Shown here: in pieces, positions 28,859 to 38,900 of the stretch | How positions within the stretch are numbered: position 1 is the stretch's first letter | How the letters are laid out: every line of letters begins with the position of its first letter | Assembly: GCA_002104945.1 (NCBI GenBank) | Contig: MCFH01000045.1 | Coordinates: forward strand, 186,001 to 250,000 | Direction of reading: 5' to 3' | Source of the DNA: Piromyces finnis finn | Lineage: Eukaryota; Fungi; Neocallimastigomycota | Length of the DNA stretch: 64,000 nucleotides | The notes under the pieces: generated by a model | Seen by the model: the letters and a program-made list of their open reading frames with translations, nothing else | Told to the model about the DNA's origin: nothing | Database searches by the model: none | Translations under genes and position numbers: made by a program

Positions 28859-29890
28859 TTAATTACAATGATAAATTTCTGGGAAACGATCATTAAATAC
28901 ACAAATTCTTTGACGAATATCTTTTAATATATCAAAGGAAAGAGAAGTGAATAAAATTTCATCAAAAGAAGAATGATTTCCAATGGAAGGATTTCCTTCC
29001 ATTTTAATTATTTCTCTGTAAAGAAGAGGATTCGTGCTAGAACTATTGTCCTTTAATATATCATCTAATGGTCCACTACCTTCCACTAAAACCTCGCCCC
29101 ATGGATTAATAACAAGGGAATGTCCACAAAAAGTTAATCCATCCATTTCACCGCAATTATTAACAGCAACAACAAAACATTGATTTTCAATAGCTCTGGT
29201 AATTAATAAATGTTTCCAATGAGATAATCTAGGATATGGCCAAGCAGCTGAAACAAATAATATATCCAAACCACCAACTTGTACTGGAAAAGTTGAAGAA
29301 TTCTCATGATTGGTTTGCTCAAGTAATTTATTTTTTAAATTTATTCCTTCAAGAGCAATGGAACGAATAAATTCTGGGAATCGAATATCATAACAAATTA
29401 CACTAGAAAAAATACATTCAAGTTTATTTTCATTTTCGGTATTATCATCTGATGAGAATGTTGTTGATGTTACTTTATATTGGTTACCTCTGGTAAAAAC
29501 GGTTTGCTCTTTTGAAGGTGAAAATAAATGAACTTTGGCATAGGTACTTAAACATTGACCTTCACTATTAATATTAATATTTAAATTTTGATATATATTC
29601 TTTTGGGTATCATAATTTGCTACAGAACCACCAATAATCATGACTTTATGTTTATTAGCAAGTTCTTTTAAAAATTGCTTTGTTTCAATTCCGTCTTTAT
29701 CACAATATTGATCCACTTTATTTATAGTAAAACCAATATTCCACATTTCAGGTAATACAATAATATCAGGTTTTTGTGGAAGTGACATTACTTTATTTAT
29801 ATATTTTTTAATTTTATTTTTATTAGCTTCATAATTATAGGGTATCACTGAAAGTTGAATAAGACATACATTAACGTTATTTTGTTTCAT
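28859..29890 (-). CDS. Carbon-nitrogen hydrolase (nitrilase superfamily), omega-amidase MtnU/YafV/NIT2-like; intronless
   Basis: Glu-Lys-Cys triad motifs PDIIVLPEMW, YAKVHLF and ICYDIRFPE, plus AWPYPRLSHWKHLLITRAIENQCFVVAVN and GHSLVINPWGEVL. Confidence 0.92.
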   Translation of the reverse strand: MKQNNVNVCLIQLSVIPYNYEANKNKIKKYINKVMSLPQKPDIIVLPEMWNIGFTINKVDQYCDKDGIETKQFLKELANKHKVMIIGGSVANYDTQKNIYQNLNININSEGQCLSTYAKVHLFSPSKEQTVFTRGNQYKVTSTTFSSDDNTENENKLECIFSSVICYDIRFPEFIRSIALEGINLKNKLLEQTNHENSSTFPVQVGGLDILFVSAAWPYPRLSHWKHLLITRAIENQCFVVAVNNCGEMDGLTFCGHSLVINPWGEVLVEGSGPLDDILKDNSSSTNPLLYREIIKMEGNPSIGNHSSFDEILFTSLSFDILKDIRQRICVFNDRFPEIYHCN

Positions 29891-30755: not shown

Positions 30756-33700
30756 TTATTTTAATTTTCCATTACGGTGATAGCCAAATGGGGATATACA
30801 ATTATTATTATTATTAATACGTCTTTCTAATTCTTTTATTCTTTTAGCTAATGTTGCATTTTCTGCTAAAAGACCAAGAACAAGTGATTCGTGTTCATTA
30901 CATTTTTCACATTGACAAGCACTACCATCATCAAAATAGGAATTTGAATGATAAGTGTTATAGACTTCTTCCTCTGAGATAGAATTATTATTAACGGTAT
31001 TATAGACTTTATTGGATCTATGTACGGAAGAAAGTGAGGAAGATGATGGCTTATTTTCCGAGGATGAAGAAGATGACGAATAATCTTGGTTATAAGATAA
31101 TCGATTAGGATTAGGAAGAGAAGAACGACGATTATTATTTATTTTTATGAATTTTTGTCCTGAAAGTAATTGTTCATGTTGGTATATTAAACCTTCGTGT
31201 TGACTTGTTGAAGGTGGTGAAGTTAAATAGTAACTATCATGATCAATACCCTTCAACTTATTAAGATAATACTCATTGGAATGCGTTGGTGAATAGGAGT
31301 TTCTTCTTCTTCCTAAATTATTATATGAATTCAAATTTGCGTGAGAATGAGCTTTGTAACTTGGATTTTTATCAGGCATGAATAAAACATAGTTAGTTGC
31401 AGATAAATGATTATTAGAATTCTCTCGATGATTCGTTAATGGAGGCGATAACAATGGATCATTCATGCTAGTACCTAATTTATACCCTTTATTTTCAATG
31501 TAAGAAAGGGATTGTTGACTTTGGTTTTTTATTCTACCATCATTTACAATGGATGATGAAGTAGAACGGATTTTTGAGGGCTGAGGAGTAATATCGTCAA
31601 AATCTTCTTCATGATCAATACTTGCCTCAACTCCATTAATTAAAAACTGTAATTTGTGCTCATCAGAAACTGTAACGACTTCAGAACTTGACGTTTTATC
31701 ACCCGAAGAAGAAAAAGAAAGGGAATTATCTAATGATTTCGATGAATTTTTAACTTGATTAGTATTACCGTCAGAGAATGAATTTAATTCTTTTCCGTTA
31801 TATTCCTGAGGATTAGATCTTAAATTCATTTTATCACGCTTTTTAGATAGTATTTCTAATACAGGGTTGATAACATCATTCAACGAACTTTCTTGGTAAT
31901 TATTGATAAGCTGTAGTTGATGTAATTTATTAATTAATAAATCAATTTTTTCATTTTCATCTTCTCTATTCTTTTCCTCCTCTCCTTCCTTAATCCTTTC
32001 ATTATTTTTTTCATTTCCATTATGTATGGATCTAAAGTCAGAAATAACTCCTTCATCCATTTCCGGAGAACCGGTCAACCCAATATTATTAATTGTTTGA
32101 TCCTCAATGTAATTTGACGTTACAAAACTTTCTTCACTTTGACTATCTATCTCTCGAATAGTTGTTGCTGAAGATGTGGAATGGAATACAGGATTATAGA
32201 GATTATAACGCTTGGGTAAATAGAGACTATTAATACTAGAAATTCTTGCAGGTTGATTAGTTAAAAGTTGGTTTAAGGTTTGTAATATTTCTGTTGCTGT
32301 AGGTCTTTGATAAGGATCAACATTAGCCATACTTAATAAAAGGTTACATTCCTCGGGCCATCTCTTTTTAAGAAAATCTGGAATTTCACCTTTTCTTAAA
32401 TTGACCAGGTGGGCCATACGATCAAAAGAGGTACAAAATGGGAAGAAAAGTTCTAACATAATAACACTTAAAGAATAAATATCAGTAGCAAATGAATAGG
32501 GTTTGCGTGAGAGTTGTTCTGGTGAAGCATAGAGTAATGTACCTACACCAAGCGTTAAATCACTTTCACCTCCACTTTTCATGGTTTTCATACTACAATT
32601 ATTATTATCATTAGTTATTTCTTCTTTCATCAGCATTTTTAAATGATGAACATGATCTTCATTATCTGCTTTATCTGCAATAGCTAAATCATTAATATCA
32701 CAGTCGGAATTACCTTTTACATATCTTTTTGCTAAACCGAAATCACCAATCATCACACGATCATCATTCATAAAAATATTTGCTGGCTTTATATCACGAT
32801 GAATAAAACCGGATTTATGAATATGTTCGAGACCAGTAGTAATTTGTGAAAGTATAGTTAAATTCTTTTTTCGATTGATATAGTCAAGGAACCAATGCTT
32901 GGAATGCTTGACATGGACATCTTCTTCATTATTTAAGAATGGAGCATGTTTCCATATTTTTGCATTTCTTTCACGAATCCATTTTCTTAAATTATTAGGT
33001 GATGAATATTCCATTTGAATGTAAAGCATAGTATTGGCTGGAATTTGATAAATCGTATTTTTTGCTAAATCACAATCGTCAACGATAGTAGAAACACTAC
33101 TACCCGTTGAAAATTCATCGTCATAGTTTCCATTTGAATTTGTATTATTAAATTCAATATTATTACTATTATTATTATACTCTTCATGATGATGTTCGTC
33201 ATCTTTTACATTATTTTGGGAGGTATTTGAGAAATATTCTTCTTCATTGATAGTATTTTGTGTCTTTAACATTTGTTCCTTATGATCCTCTATTGAAAAT
33301 TGATTGTCTAACAACATTGTTTTAATAGAGTTATTACTATAAGTGGAATTATACGAATTACATGTCTCATTATCACTTTGGTGAAATTTATTTTCATTTT
33401 TATTAGGAATAGTTATGCCAACGCAATTATACGTTGGGCAATTTTCAAAGGATTCGAACGTGTCGCGCGTTACAATTGGGAGTTTGTCATTTTCACGGGA
33501 AGAGCAACTTTCTTCTTCATGTTCTGTTAAGAATATATCATCATTCTTTTCAGAAAATTGTGTTACTATTTCTTCTTTATCATCCAATCCATAGTTATCA
33601 AAGGTTTGGGAATCCGAATTTTGACCTGCTATACTATCATCTGTAGTATTCGTAGTAGTCAATTCAATTTCAGAATAATTATTAAGGTTAGTTTGAGAAG

Positions 33701-35933
33701 AAGAAAGCATATTGATTTCTTCGTTGGAAGTGTTAATGACTGGAAGTTCCATAAGGGTTAATGAAGATTCATCGTCATCACTAAGAGTGCTAGAAGAATC
33801 GCTTGGGTGATGCTCATAGTAGGATTCACTGGTATAATGAGAACCAGATTGATCATTTCTGGATAAAGAATCCATTATATTATTATAGCAATGGGAGTCG
33901 TGAGTACTATTATAACTTTGACCTTCAATAGTGTCATTCAAAAAACTATGTTGATTATCACAATTTTTATAAAAGTTTCTTACATTGATATTATAATGGT
34001 TGATATTATCTAAATTTCCATTTTTACTTTTACTATCACTTGATGGTTTTTCTCCGGAACACAATGGTATAGAATGTGATGAAATACTTTTATTTTCTGA
34101 ATTAATATTTTTAGGATGAGATATGGATGAGTTTGTAGATTGATTTGCATCAAACGAAGAATAAACTTCAAAAGAAGAAGGAGTAGAATTCAAAATTTCC
34201 CTTTCTTTTGAATTTTGATTATATGAACTTTGAGTTGAAAGTTGTTGTAATGGAGAGCAATTATTGTTACTATCTTCAATAAAAGATTTAGGAAGGGAGG
34301 TAATCATTCTAAGATCAGAAGGACCATTACCAAAAATGTCAAAATCTTCATCCTCCTTTTCAAAACAATTATTCGTATTTGAAGAGTTTGAAGTGGTATA
34401 ATTATTATGGCTTTGGTTTTGATTCTGATTAAGATAGTTTTTATTAGTTTTTGAATAGATAACATTGGAAGATGAATCATTAGGATTATTTTCAATAGAA
34501 TCATATATACTATAATTTTCATTAGGCATTCCTGGTTCATTTGCAGAAGCTATTGGAGTATTGGGATGAACATGATCAAATGGTGAAATAATATTTTCCT
34601 GTGATGGTTGAGCGGAATTTACTTTAGAATCTGTTACTTTTTGTAAATCATCGTTAAGAAGAACAGGTTCTACCCAAGAAGCATAGTAACGAACTACATT
34701 TGGATGACTTTTAAATTTTGCAAAATTTTTGACTTCACGAATAACTCTTAAATCATCTAATGTTAGTGATGTTTTCATTTGTTCAACTATTTTTTCATCT
34801 TTATTTTCATGATAATCGTCCTCTTCCTGATCATACAATTGATATTTTGAACAATTAGCTGAACTACAACCATATTCATCTTTATTATATCTTTCTTCAT
34901 CTGAATTCATCATATTCATACATTCAATATAATCCTGTGGATGACATTGTAAAGGTATTTTTTTAATTGCATAAACTTGTTCATCTAATTTATTCTTTGC
35001 TAAATATACTGATCCAAAACCACCTTTTCCTATACATTTTATTTCTATTAGTTTTTGTTTGTTTTCAATTGAAATGAATTATAATTATTATAAAATATGA
35101 AGCATTATTTAAAAATGAAATATGTTTTCAATTCAATTTATAAAGTTTAAGTGTGTATTTTTTTTATAATAAATGATATTAATTATAAAAAATTATTATA
35201 TAGATAAAGGATTATTATATATGTAATATATATAAGGTTAATTTATATAATTTATAATTGTTTATTATTAAAATTACTAAATAATATAGAATTGAATAAC
35301 AAACCTTTAAACTCAGTATAATAACGCGATTTTGTCCATTCAATTTCTGTTAATTGTCTAGTGATATCACGAACACTAACAATATAATAAGCTGTATTGT
35401 CTACGTTATTAGTACTTGTACTTCTATCATCCTTATCAATTAAACATGCAATTGATATATCAATATCAATTTTGTTAATTTTTGTATCGTTATTGCTATG
35501 TGACAACTTCCTTAAACCAGAGGTTATTATTGATTTCTCATAATGATTTGATCTTAACTCTTTATATAATAAAATATTTTTTATGAAAAAAAAAAATAGA
35601 CATGGAATAATAAAAAAAAAATAAATATAAGTTTTTTTCTTCATTATAAAATATAATTTATTATAGGTATAAAATAACTTATTATTAAAAGCATTTACCT
35701 TCATTATCCAAATTTAAATATGGTATCAATTTTGAAATATTAATATTTCCTATTAACTCTTCTCTTGAGTATTCAAAAAGTTCTTCAGCATAAGAATTTA
35801 CCTCTAGAATTGTTCCATATTCATCCAATATGAGCATTGGATCCGTAAGACTCTCTAAAATAGTCTTTGCATTATTTAAATACCAATAATTTTTTATTGA
35901 TAAGTTTGGTGTTTCTATTCTTTGTACTTGCAT
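30756..35933 (-). CDS. eIF2-alpha kinase (HRI/PERK-like) with an N-terminal PAS/PAC domain; 3 exons (35699-35933, 35305-35559, 30756-35044), about 1592 aa
   Basis: Exons join in frame through GT-AG introns (both phase 1). PAS: KTILESLTDPMLILDEYGTILEVNSYAEELFEYSREELIG; PAC: YYIVSVRDIT. Kinase: [88 protein letters not shown] and DIYSLSVIMLEL. Confidence 0.88.
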
Positions 35934-38900
35934 TTTAAAAAAAAAATTAAGGTATATAATGTAATTGTTTTTCCTATTTCAAAACTGTTGTTATTACACC
36001 AGGAAATATATTATTTAATTGGAATAGTAAAGTATATAGTTTATTTTCTTTTTTAATAAAATAGAAATTTGAGAGATTTTCTATAATATATACTTTTAAT
36101 GTGTTCTAAATAATGAACTCACTTTTTTTTTTCCGTTTAAAAAAAATAACAATAATTCAAATATTTTTCTTTTAGAAAAGGGGAATGACTTTTTATTATT
36201 GATATTAACTTTTGAATACTATGGTATTAAATTAAAAAAAAATAATTATAATAATATATAATTTTGGTTTTTAATTAAAAAATATTAACTTGGTCACTTT
36301 TTTTTCTAAATATATTCAAGTATTTTGTTTGTTGCAAAGTTTGTTTTTTTTTTTTATAAAAAAAGCTTTCAAACAAAATTAGGTTTTAAAATCTCGCTTT
36401 TATATTATTAAGTGTTATTGTCCTTCAAGGATAGATTATTTTGGTAAAAAAAAAATAATATTTGAAAATTGAATTAGGGATTCAACGTCTATAATATACT
36501 TTTTGAATTCTTTTTGAAATTTAATTTATATATTTTTTATCTTGTTTTATTTAATACTTTGTTATTAAAAGGAAGATGCTTATTATATATAAATAATTAA
36601 ATTATATAGCGAAAAAATATAAATATATATATATATATTTAGCTTTTTTTTTTTTTACAATAATTGAAATTAAATTAATTTATAATGAAACTGTATACAA
36701 ATTATAAAATATTATAAAATATATGAAATGATATAAATATATTTAAAACATTATTTTAAAAGATAATAATAAATAAAAAAAAAAAAAGATTAATTACAAA
36801 TAAAAAAAGAGGTGTGATTTTTTTTTTTTGCTCTCTTTTTTAGATTTCTTATTTTGTATAATAAATAATCATAATCAGTTTGAGATTTCCAATTATGATT
36901 TGTTTCGTTTTTTTTTTATACTTTACTATTGTTATTTGTTGGTTAAAATTACTATTAATACTATTGTTATTGTTATTAATATATTTTTCTATTTGATCCT
37001 TTATTTTTCTTCTCTGTTTCAATTTTTTATTATATTTAAAAATGAAAAAAATAAAAGTTATATTTTTTTAAGATTTCTATTTTTCTTACAATTGTTTTAA
37101 TAGAAATATTTATTTGATTTGTTATTTTGATATCAAATAGAAAGATAATAAAATCAATAAAATAAAATTATATAATAATAATATTTTGGTAAAAATTAAA
37201 ACTGTATTTTTTTTTCTAAATAATACAGAAAAAAAATATGTCGTTAAAACATTGTTTTATATTGAATTTTTATTAATAATTATTTAAGAGGTCGTAATAT
37301 TATTTTAATATTATATATTTATATATTATTATTGTTATTTTTTTTTTTTTTTTTACAATATATGTTTGAATTTTCACTATTGATAATCAATTTAAATTTT
37401 TGATGTTTGAATCTTGAAAAAGTAGTAACAAAACTAGAATGATTAAAATAAAAAGTTAAGATTCTGACAAATTTGAATACTTTATATAAATATATTTACT
37501 AAAGTATTGTTTTTTTCTATTTTATTAATATTATAATATTTTCCCTTTTATATTATCAATAATGAGATTTAATTGAATACCGAAATGAGTTTATGAAATG
37601 AACCATAAAATATATATTTATAAATTTAATATAAAAAAAAAAAAAAAACAATATAAATAGAAATTTTTTTATCAATATTATTATTATTATTATTTAATTA
37701 TTACTTAAAATTAAAATTTATTTAATTATTAAAAATTTTAATAAAAATGATATCATTAAAAAAAAATTTATAATAAAATAATAAAACTTAAATTAATAAT
37801 AAATGAATAGAATATAAACAATATTAACAACAAATAAAATAAAAAATGATAAAATATAAAATATATAAAAATATATATATATATAATCTATAAAGATTTA
37901 TCATAGTTAATAGGATAAAGAGAATACTAATAAAGAATAGTTTAATCCATTATTATAAAGCGAATACTAAAAGGTCAATAATAATAAAGGATTTTAAAAT
38001 ATTCTTTATTAATAAATTTGATAAAATTACTCTAGATAATTAATTCCTAACCCTAAAGCCTAATTCTTTTCCTATATTTATTTAAATATTAATTGTTTTA
38101 TTCATTGACTTTTAACATTTAAAATAATATATTATTACAATACATTGAGAGTATAATCGAATATATAGTTTATTCTGTTTATATTCTAAATTTGAAATCC
38201 ATCCTATATTTATATATTATATATTTATTATTTATAATAAATTAATATATTTAAAATACATTTCTATATATAATTAAAGTATATTATTAATTGTTAAATT
38301 AATAAATTTTAATTAAATTAATAATTCTTACATTATTTTAATTTATTCACCATTTTTTACTATTATAGAATAGAATCTCATAAAAGTAAATGGATATATT
38401 AATTAATAATTAAATAAATATTCAATAAAAAACCAGGGATTTTATACTAAATAAAAGACATATCAAAGAATTAAAGTGTTCAAATGTAATATAGAAAGAA
38501 TGATCATCATTATAAATATAATTTGCCTAAGATAAGTCTTTTTTTCTACTCTACTATTAAATGATAATTATGGTTTTTTTAAAAAAAAAAAAAGAAAACT
38601 CTTATAGTAATATTTTAATTAAATTGTCAACCAAAAAATAAATTAAATAATATATATTGGAATATATTATTAAATATTATTAAATATATTACAATTTAAT
38701 ACAAAAAAACCTTTTTTTAGTTTATCATTGACTGCTATTTAAATATATTATAATATATTATAATATATTTTGTTGTAATTCTCAATTAATTCAAATATAT
38801 ATTAATATAAAAAAGAAATCTTTCAATAGTAAAAGTTTAAATAAATGAATATATAAATTGCATTTTAATAAATTAACTATAAATATCAATAGATAAATAA

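Follow-up and report, generated by a model that had tools for sequence, protein, structure and literature searches.

What does the large minus-strand gene at positions 30756-35933 of this stretch of Piromyces finnis DNA encode, and could its product sense haem or oxygen? The stretch, which we refer to as the window, comprises 64,000 nucleotides of contig MCFH01000045.1 (positions 186,001 to 250,000). An earlier note, made from its letters, had proposed that the gene fuses a PAS sensor domain to an HRI-like kinase of eIF2-alpha and might thereby place translation under the control of haem, oxygen or redox state. We found that the predicted protein carries the sequence hallmarks of the eIF2-alpha kinase (PEK) family and that it is not HRI. 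We consider it probable that the gene encodes a soluble PEK kinase, one of three paralogues in this genome, whose PAS domain is joined to the kinase N-lobe by a helical linker of about 20 residues, has lost the haem ligand and serves as a regulatory or dimerising module. Neither the combination of a PAS domain with such a kinase nor the idea of redox sensing is new to print, and the window gene is the soluble paralogue of kinases that have been described. Swift et al. (2021, Front Fungal Biol, PMC10512342) reported 'PERK-like' kinases in four anaerobic fungi, noted that two of these kinases, N. californiae 503500 and P. finnis 367815, combine a PAS domain at the N-terminus with a transmembrane helix close to the C-terminus, and suggested that the PAS domain senses oxidative or redox state. 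Because only candidates with transmembrane helices were kept in that study, the paralogue in the window was apparently left untreated there; its Supplementary Table 1 also lists eIF2-alpha homologues for these fungi. We infer that MycoCosm protein 367815 is the second P. finnis paralogue (paralogue B) from the description in the paper (transmembrane helix, high similarity to 503500).

A list of open reading frames (ORFs) presents the locus in pieces, as a long minus-strand ORF (34919-30756) with two shorter coding pieces ahead of it. Reading the minus strand, we found that three exons (35933-35699, 35559-35305 and 35044-30756) join in frame to give a coding sequence of 4779 nucleotides with one stop codon, at its end, and a product of 1592 amino acids. 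This product matches ORX44509.1 (A0A1Y1V0B8, here P0001) at every residue. The public record is named 'kinase-like protein [Piromyces finnis]' and has precomputed Pfam PAS and protein kinase domains, so that with the PAS-bearing PERK-like kinases already published (PMC10512342), the architecture can no longer be called undescribed, as the earlier note had it. Exon 1 (35699..35933) runs from the start codon at 35933 through residues 1-78 and the first base of codon 79, and exon 2 (35305..35559) encodes residues 79-164. Both introns have GT..AG ends and interrupt the frame in phase 1, and neither intron 1 (35560..35698, 139 nucleotides, 11% GC) nor intron 2 (35045..35304, 260 nucleotides, 12% GC) has a length divisible by three. 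The window as a whole is very AT-rich, with 11-15% GC in intergenic and intron DNA and approximately 30% in coding sequence.

On two transcript-like contigs from the Joint Genome Institute (L001 and L002, each 5.1 kb long), an uninterrupted ORF of 1575 amino acids (P0137) encodes an orthologue of the window protein, with 89% identity in the kinase C-lobe. Both contigs lack both introns. Their alignment to the window falls into three blocks, which end at window positions 35699, 35555-35305 and 35046; on the contig side, neighbouring blocks are contiguous (580/585 and 826/825), exon 1 being matched by L001:334-580 and exon 2 by L001:585-826. At each junction the orthologue contig reads through the codon that the window intron splits. 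Because L001 and L002 run unbroken across both junctions, these junctions are used in the mRNA of a related species. We also examined three sequencing runs of the window's own organism (X1-X3), listed as RNA, a type that was guessed by the tool. These runs contained 0.70 of the words sampled from positions 34700-36100 and 0.45 of those from 35045-35700, and most of the words of intron 1 were missing. For these two intervals, removal of both introns would give shares of 0.665 and 0.36, retention of one intron 0.79-0.88 and 0.585-0.775, and unspliced sequence 1.0; the sampling was coarse, at 64-141 words. The observed shares agree best with the removal of both introns. The two upstream exons therefore splice in frame onto the kinase ORF as had been proposed, giving the deposited product, and the PAS exons are part of the kinase gene, as the continuous orthologue ORF across both junctions attests.

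Comparison of exon 3 with solved structures gave human EIF2AK1/HRI as the best match (9rhh, 5.7e-34), followed by PERK (4.8e-30), PKR (6.5e-24) and GCN2 (1.2e-21). The top 19 solved matches were all EIF2AK1-4, with PLK and NEK kinases coming after them at 1e-15 or weaker. The catalytic core is complete. The N-lobe, at the start of exon 3 (34659..35044, residues 165-292), aligns to HRI and PERK and contains GKGGFG (169-174), Lys191 within YAIKK, the αC motif REVK at 266 and [10 protein letters not shown]; an additional loop of about 55 residues separates β3 from αC. The C-lobe (32259..33059, residues 826-1092) contains HRDIKPAN (912), DFG (931) and an insert in the activation loop. A much larger kinase insert (33060..34658, residues 293-825, about 530 residues) lies between β4 and β5; it is low in complexity and rich in Asn and Ser, and the Pfam kinase match is broken into several stretches. 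The signatures of the PEK family are present, namely SRYYTEFKE at 156 before β1, the β4-β5 insert, the P+1 sequence LYASPEQ and two activation-loop threonines (Thr994 and Thr999 in [15 protein letters not shown], from 993). The αG motif reads PFCTSFDR (1032), and the threonine of PFCT (1032-1035) aligns to those of FGT in HRI and FST in PERK. The roles of these signatures come from work on PKR, HRI and PERK, and in PKR the αG threonine is required for docking of eIF2-alpha. On these sequence grounds the window kinase belongs to the eIF2-alpha kinase family.

Similarity to HRI extends to the SRY preface, LYASPEQ and the kinase insert, and the fungal HRI that we inspected also has a C-terminal coiled coil. 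Two haem-related features of HRI are absent, however. The haem-binding N-terminal domain HRI2_3H (PF22949), which Pfam finds in the fungal HRI P0014 (1e-26), is not in P0001, where Pfam returns only PAS and kinase domains. HRI also has conserved Cys-Pro motifs of the haem-regulatory type, and the window protein has a single Cys-Pro, at residue 699, which is missing in all five orthologues checked. No luminal-domain Pfam match was found in the window protein, which likewise does not have PERK's arrangement of signal peptide, luminal sensor and N-terminal transmembrane helix.

To place the kinase, we stripped the inserts from 43 kinase domains and built a tree over 257 columns (IQ-TREE, LG+C20), in which a bacterial outgroup was the only group from outside the PEK family. 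The PEK sequences split from this outgroup at 100/100. One clade (98/98), starred in our tree, unites the three anaerobic-fungus groups A (which holds the window protein), B and C with five proteins or loci that carry a FixL-type PAS domain and with the proteins annotated as 'eIF2-alpha kinases' in Gonapodya, Nowakowskiella and Entophlyctis. GCN2 (97/100), HRI with HRI2_3H (90/92) and PERK (97/94) form separate groups. Solved matches, motifs and tree thus agree in bearing out the family assignment of the earlier note. Its qualifier 'HRI-like' stands as a statement of general similarity, HRI being the best solved match, and fails as a placement, since the protein lacks PF22949 and lies outside the HRI clade. 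Approximately unbiased (AU) tests rejected neither a sister position of the starred clade to HRI (p = 0.146) nor one to PERK (p = 0.19), and the label 'HRI-like' is therefore as loose as 'PERK-like'. Monophyly of groups A, B and C together was not rejected either (p = 0.14). The nearest relatives of the window kinase outside the anaerobes are the kinases with FixL-type PAS domains (path length 0.88, sister grouping 86/84), and the stem branch of group A is long (0.6). The clade is known so far from zoosporic fungi (Gonapodya, Entophlyctis, Nowakowskiella and the anaerobic gut fungi) and from unassigned metagenome sequences.

We then asked what kind of PAS domain precedes the kinase. The cap helix at the N-terminus and the first half of the PAS domain, from Aβ to Eα, come from exon 1, which matches Pfam PAS at 7.2e-11 on this piece alone; exon 2 supplies a short Fα, the Gβ, Hβ and Iβ strands, the linker helix and, ahead of the kinase, the SRY..EF.E motif. 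On the full protein, Pfam found PAS (PF00989, 3.1e-09), with PAS_9 covering residues 31-145, and then the split kinase. An AlphaFold model made from a 19-sequence alignment has a complete PAS fold, in which a cap helix (13-28) is followed by strands at 33-36 and 41-45, helices at 47-53, 57-60 and 66-69, an Fα of six residues (78-83), strands at 88-94 (Gβ), 108-119 and 135-143, and a helix that begins at 145 and runs into the kinase preface. Foldseek searches with this model gave FixL as the best match (8js5, E 5e-08), with DosP and short LOV proteins next. FixL was also the best solved match by sequence (phmmer, E 0.0044), in an alignment that covers residues 22-72 only and ends before the haem-binding half.

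The likeness to FixL that the earlier note had drawn is therefore real in sequence and fold, FixL and DosP being the nearest solved relatives of the domain, and it does not extend to the haem histidine that the note had tentatively placed in RSNH. This histidine, H84, is a tyrosine in the orthologues P0137, P0141 and P0284, which are 68-80% identical over the N-terminal region. The histidine that ligates haem in FixL is missing in all three anaerobic-fungus groups (alignment A3), and for group A the haem-histidine motif falls in a gap (alignments A1 and A3), with the stretch from Fα to the FG loop about 10 residues shorter than in the FixL-type relatives. The distal arginine of FixL has no counterpart in the window protein, and we found no His or Cys conserved across the group A PAS domains that might serve as an alternative ligand. 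Because H84 is not conserved, the Fα-FG stretch is shortened and the lone Cys-Pro is not conserved, haem ligation in the manner of FixL is unlikely. We also considered whether an overlooked micro-exon, or a splice site at another position, might supply the absent Fα and FG residues, and rejected this: read-through of exon 1 stops after four codons, and the orthologue mRNA has the identical short junction. The PAS domain remains under purifying selection, and it is most likely a regulatory or dimerising module.

Relatives outside the anaerobic fungi proved informative. P0006, a single uninterrupted ORF of 1173 amino acids (L003:4030-7551, on a Logan contig of SRR23967301), fuses a PAS domain to an eIF2-alpha-type kinase. 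Its PAS domain matches FixL at 4.6e-22, has a histidine aligned to the FixL haem ligand, and also keeps the P..IG loop and an arginine at FixL's distal position; in BjFixL the haem ligand is His200 and the distal arginine is Arg220. The same haem-histidine motif is carried by P0142, P0143/P0211, P0144 and P0313. Across these relatives the motif reads H-D/N/H-R-Y/F/I-M, and the arginine at the distal position is present in all but Gonapodya. P0006 groups with Gonapodya in the tree, and the GC content of its contig (0.563) equals that of the Gonapodya locus. In Gonapodya sp. JEL0774 (GCA_027604505.1, JADIIX010000013.1, L004) we found unannotated PAS exons with the motif NHDRYM at L004:3063-3476. 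The Gβ exon there has no clean match and a histidine occupies the place of the FixL distal arginine, which limits our claim for Gonapodya to the proximal-histidine motif. As a separate observation, the model of the annotated Gonapodya protein P0007 ('eukaryotic translation initiation factor 2-alpha kinase') starts at L004:4001, about 1 kb past these exons, and its annotated N-terminus looks mis-modelled. Entophlyctis P0161 has a divergent PAS domain (PAS_8, 22.4 bits).

The window protein and its FixL-type relatives (P0006, P0142, P0143, P0144, P0313 and L004) have the same architecture, and they share the motif in the PAS-kinase linker, PLQCHPQDY after β3, and the αC motifs. The difference is that the relatives keep the haem histidine and a full-length Fα-FG stretch, and the window protein has neither. 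Because the FixL-type PAS domains of the relatives are about 45% identical to bacterial FixL, convergence is impossible, and with PAS domains found throughout the clade this makes an ancestral haem-PAS most likely. In the anaerobic gut fungi the haem ligand of that domain was most likely lost. A haem or oxygen switch of the kind once proposed for the window gene, which is unlikely for that gene given the lost FixL histidine and an Fα-FG stretch about 10 residues short, is plausible for the aerobic or facultative relatives. No description of eIF2-alpha-type kinases with a FixL-type haem-PAS was found in the literature that we searched. An exhaustive profile search with the PAS domain and N-lobe added three further fused fragments (P0284, P0313 and P0305); it was swamped by bacterial multi-PAS proteins, in which repeat scores sum, and is a poor guide to the spread of the fusion.

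Within P. finnis itself we identified three PAS-kinase paralogues: ORX44509.1 (A, the window protein), ORX50732.1 (B), which is membrane-anchored, and ORX55979.1 (C), which is short. Paralogue B (P0009, with P0011 and P0124) corresponds to the published PERK-like kinases of the Neocallimastigomycetes and resembles the window protein in its PAS domain, its insert-bearing PEK kinase, its membership of the same clade (98/98) and its loss of the FixL histidine. The two differ in that about 200 residues separate PAS and kinase in B, whereas in the window protein the PAS domain directly abuts the kinase; C-lobe identity between them is about 36%, and only B has a C-terminal transmembrane helix. This helix is a strongly hydrophobic one in the Neocallimastix orthologues P0011 and P0124. 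The NCBI model of P0009 (ORX50732.1) ends without it, and the 3' end of that model may be truncated. We also looked for a C-terminal membrane anchor of the published kind in the window protein and discarded the idea: a hydropathy scan predicted no transmembrane helix in the C-terminal tail, and the only hydrophobic stretch of the protein (1019-1037) lies within the kinase C-lobe.

The C-terminus ends in a conserved module (30756..30929, residues 1536-1592 and the stop codon) that consists of a CxCxKC motif (1540), a coiled-coil-like helix and 12 conserved last residues, and that is 88% identical to the orthologue. The coiled coil named in the earlier note is thus present, and related kinases have it too: the Cys motif and helix also occur at the C-terminus of paralogue B and of Gonapodya, with a looser version in Nowakowskiella. 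This module is preceded by a low-complexity C-terminal tail (30930..32258, residues 1093-1535). Measured against the orthologue, the ratio of non-synonymous to synonymous substitutions (dN/dS) was 0.19 for the PAS domain, 0.20 for the insert, 0.08 for the C-lobe and 0.23 for the C-terminal tail, making the C-lobe the most constrained part of the protein.

These features suggest how the kinase might work. The PAS domain ends about 20 residues before kinase β1, and this stretch is helical in the model. In FixL and LOV sensors the signal leaves the PAS β-sheet through such a helix, and PKR, PERK and GCN2 are activated by dimerisation of their N-lobes and by autophosphorylation of the activation loop. 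On the simplest reading, the PAS domain of the window protein would organise a dimer together with the C-terminal Cys motif and its coiled coil, and the state of the PAS domain, set by a ligand or a partner protein, would be passed through the linker and bias the N-lobe dimer interface. The kinase would then autophosphorylate on T994 and T999 in the activation loop, and the active enzyme would phosphorylate eIF2-alpha on Ser51 and lower general translation. The PAS domain may respond to a ligand other than haem, or may have become purely structural. Two known kinds of PAS protein resemble the window protein in part. FixL and DosP, the best sequence and fold matches of the window PAS, share its N-terminal half, but their outputs are a histidine kinase or a phosphodiesterase rather than a eukaryotic protein kinase, and their haem histidine and FG loop are missing in the window protein. 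PASK/Psk1 also places a PAS domain N-terminal to a Ser/Thr kinase, but that kinase belongs to a different group (CAMK), and no PASK chain was among the 60 best solved matches listed for the window kinase.

Other explanations of the locus were weighed against this one. It is barely credible that the PAS exons are part of another gene upstream, or of none; the exons are disconnected in the ORF scan alone, whereas the orthologue contigs hold one ORF across both junctions, the word shares of X1-X3 fit intron removal, and the same fusion recurs in the paralogues and in distant relatives, including the single ORF of P0006. A FixL-like haem sensor, in which His84 of RSNH binds haem and couples haem, oxygen or redox state to phosphorylation of eIF2-alpha, and possibly to haem-induced zoosporogenesis, has clear attractions, in that the closest solved relatives of the domain by sequence and fold are the haem sensors FixL and DosP, that relatives outside the anaerobes carry a FixL-type haem-PAS on the same kinase, and that redox sensing has been proposed for a paralogue (PMC10512342). 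We nonetheless regard it as very unlikely: the tyrosine at position 84 in P0137, P0141 and P0284 leaves group A with no conserved PAS histidine, the match to FixL ends before the haem-binding half, Fα has shrunk to six residues within an Fα-FG stretch that is about 10 residues short, the distal arginine has no counterpart, and the Cys-Pro at 699 is missing in orthologues.

A closer contest is with a PAS domain that binds no ligand and is a structural module, holding the dimer together with the coiled coil while control comes from the insert or tail, from phosphorylation or from partners. We consider this possible, though less probable than a regulated module. The cofactor ligand is lost and constraint on the domain is modest (dN/dS 0.19), the FixL PAS is dimeric in solved structures (8js5), the C-terminal Cys motif and helix are conserved across the clade, and dimerisation is established as the activating step for PKR, PERK and GCN2. 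Yet the PAS fold, the cap helix and the E.EW.KSRY linker have all been conserved from the FixL-type relatives to the window gene, which points to a signalling link that has been kept and not to a simple tether. It is also conceivable, and in our judgement improbable, that the substrate has drifted from eIF2-alpha, for example towards a function particular to anaerobic fungi, leaving an eIF2-alpha kinase by ancestry only. Three paralogues in one genome would permit sub- or neofunctionalisation, the group A stem is long (0.6), and αG reads FDR where HRI and PERK have MER; conservation of the αG threonine, of LYASPEQ and of both activation-loop threonines, together with a C-lobe dN/dS of 0.08, speaks for the ancestral substrate.

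Several points count against our own preference for a soluble PEK kinase with a regulatory or dimerising PAS domain. Splicing in P. finnis is supported by word shares and the deposited model, not by junction reads. Vertebrate HRI and PKR were left out of the tree by the length filter of the search, and the backbone among the four groups (the starred clade, GCN2, HRI and PERK) came out without resolution. We infer eIF2-alpha as the substrate from family membership and motifs alone. The mean pLDDT of the PAS model is 69.6, with 82-92 in the core, and constraint on the PAS domain is modest because its dN/dS of 0.19 is not below the 0.20 of the low-complexity insert. Loss of the histidine also leaves room for haem or another ligand, which may be bound in a different way.

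Textbook accounts recognise four sensor types for eIF2-alpha kinases. We give even odds to the wider proposal that zoosporic fungi have a fifth eIF2-alpha kinase class with an ancestral FixL haem-PAS, intact in Gonapodya-like fungi, and that the gut fungi kept three paralogues, lost haem ligation and re-used the PAS domain for another signal. If this is true, the fifth class would be a direct sensor of oxygen or haem-binding gases wired to translation initiation. The comparison indicates that early-diverging fungi have a further, PAS-based type of eIF2-alpha kinase, of which the anaerobic gut fungi have three copies, and it outlines an evolutionary story in which the FixL-PAS relatives could be oxygen-regulated translation kinases whose haem ligand was lost in obligate anaerobes. 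The window gene itself adds only modestly to what was known, as it was already annotated and a paralogue published, and the comparison speaks against investing in a FixL-style haem hypothesis for the Piromyces protein. The PAS-kinases are candidate controls of stress responses in fungi that are under development for biomass conversion.

We made three further observations around the gene. The 5' untranslated region of the orthologue (L001:70-179) aligns to window positions 36039-36149, approximately 100-200 nucleotides upstream of the start codon, with 79% identity; because of this alignment, the mRNA probably starts at or beyond 36149. The adjoining segment 36038-35940 is shorter than its counterpart in the orthologue and gave no alignment. 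Downstream, on the minus strand at 28859-29890, lies a single-exon gene for a carbon-nitrogen hydrolase of the nitrilase superfamily (Pfam PF00795, 4.8e-37).

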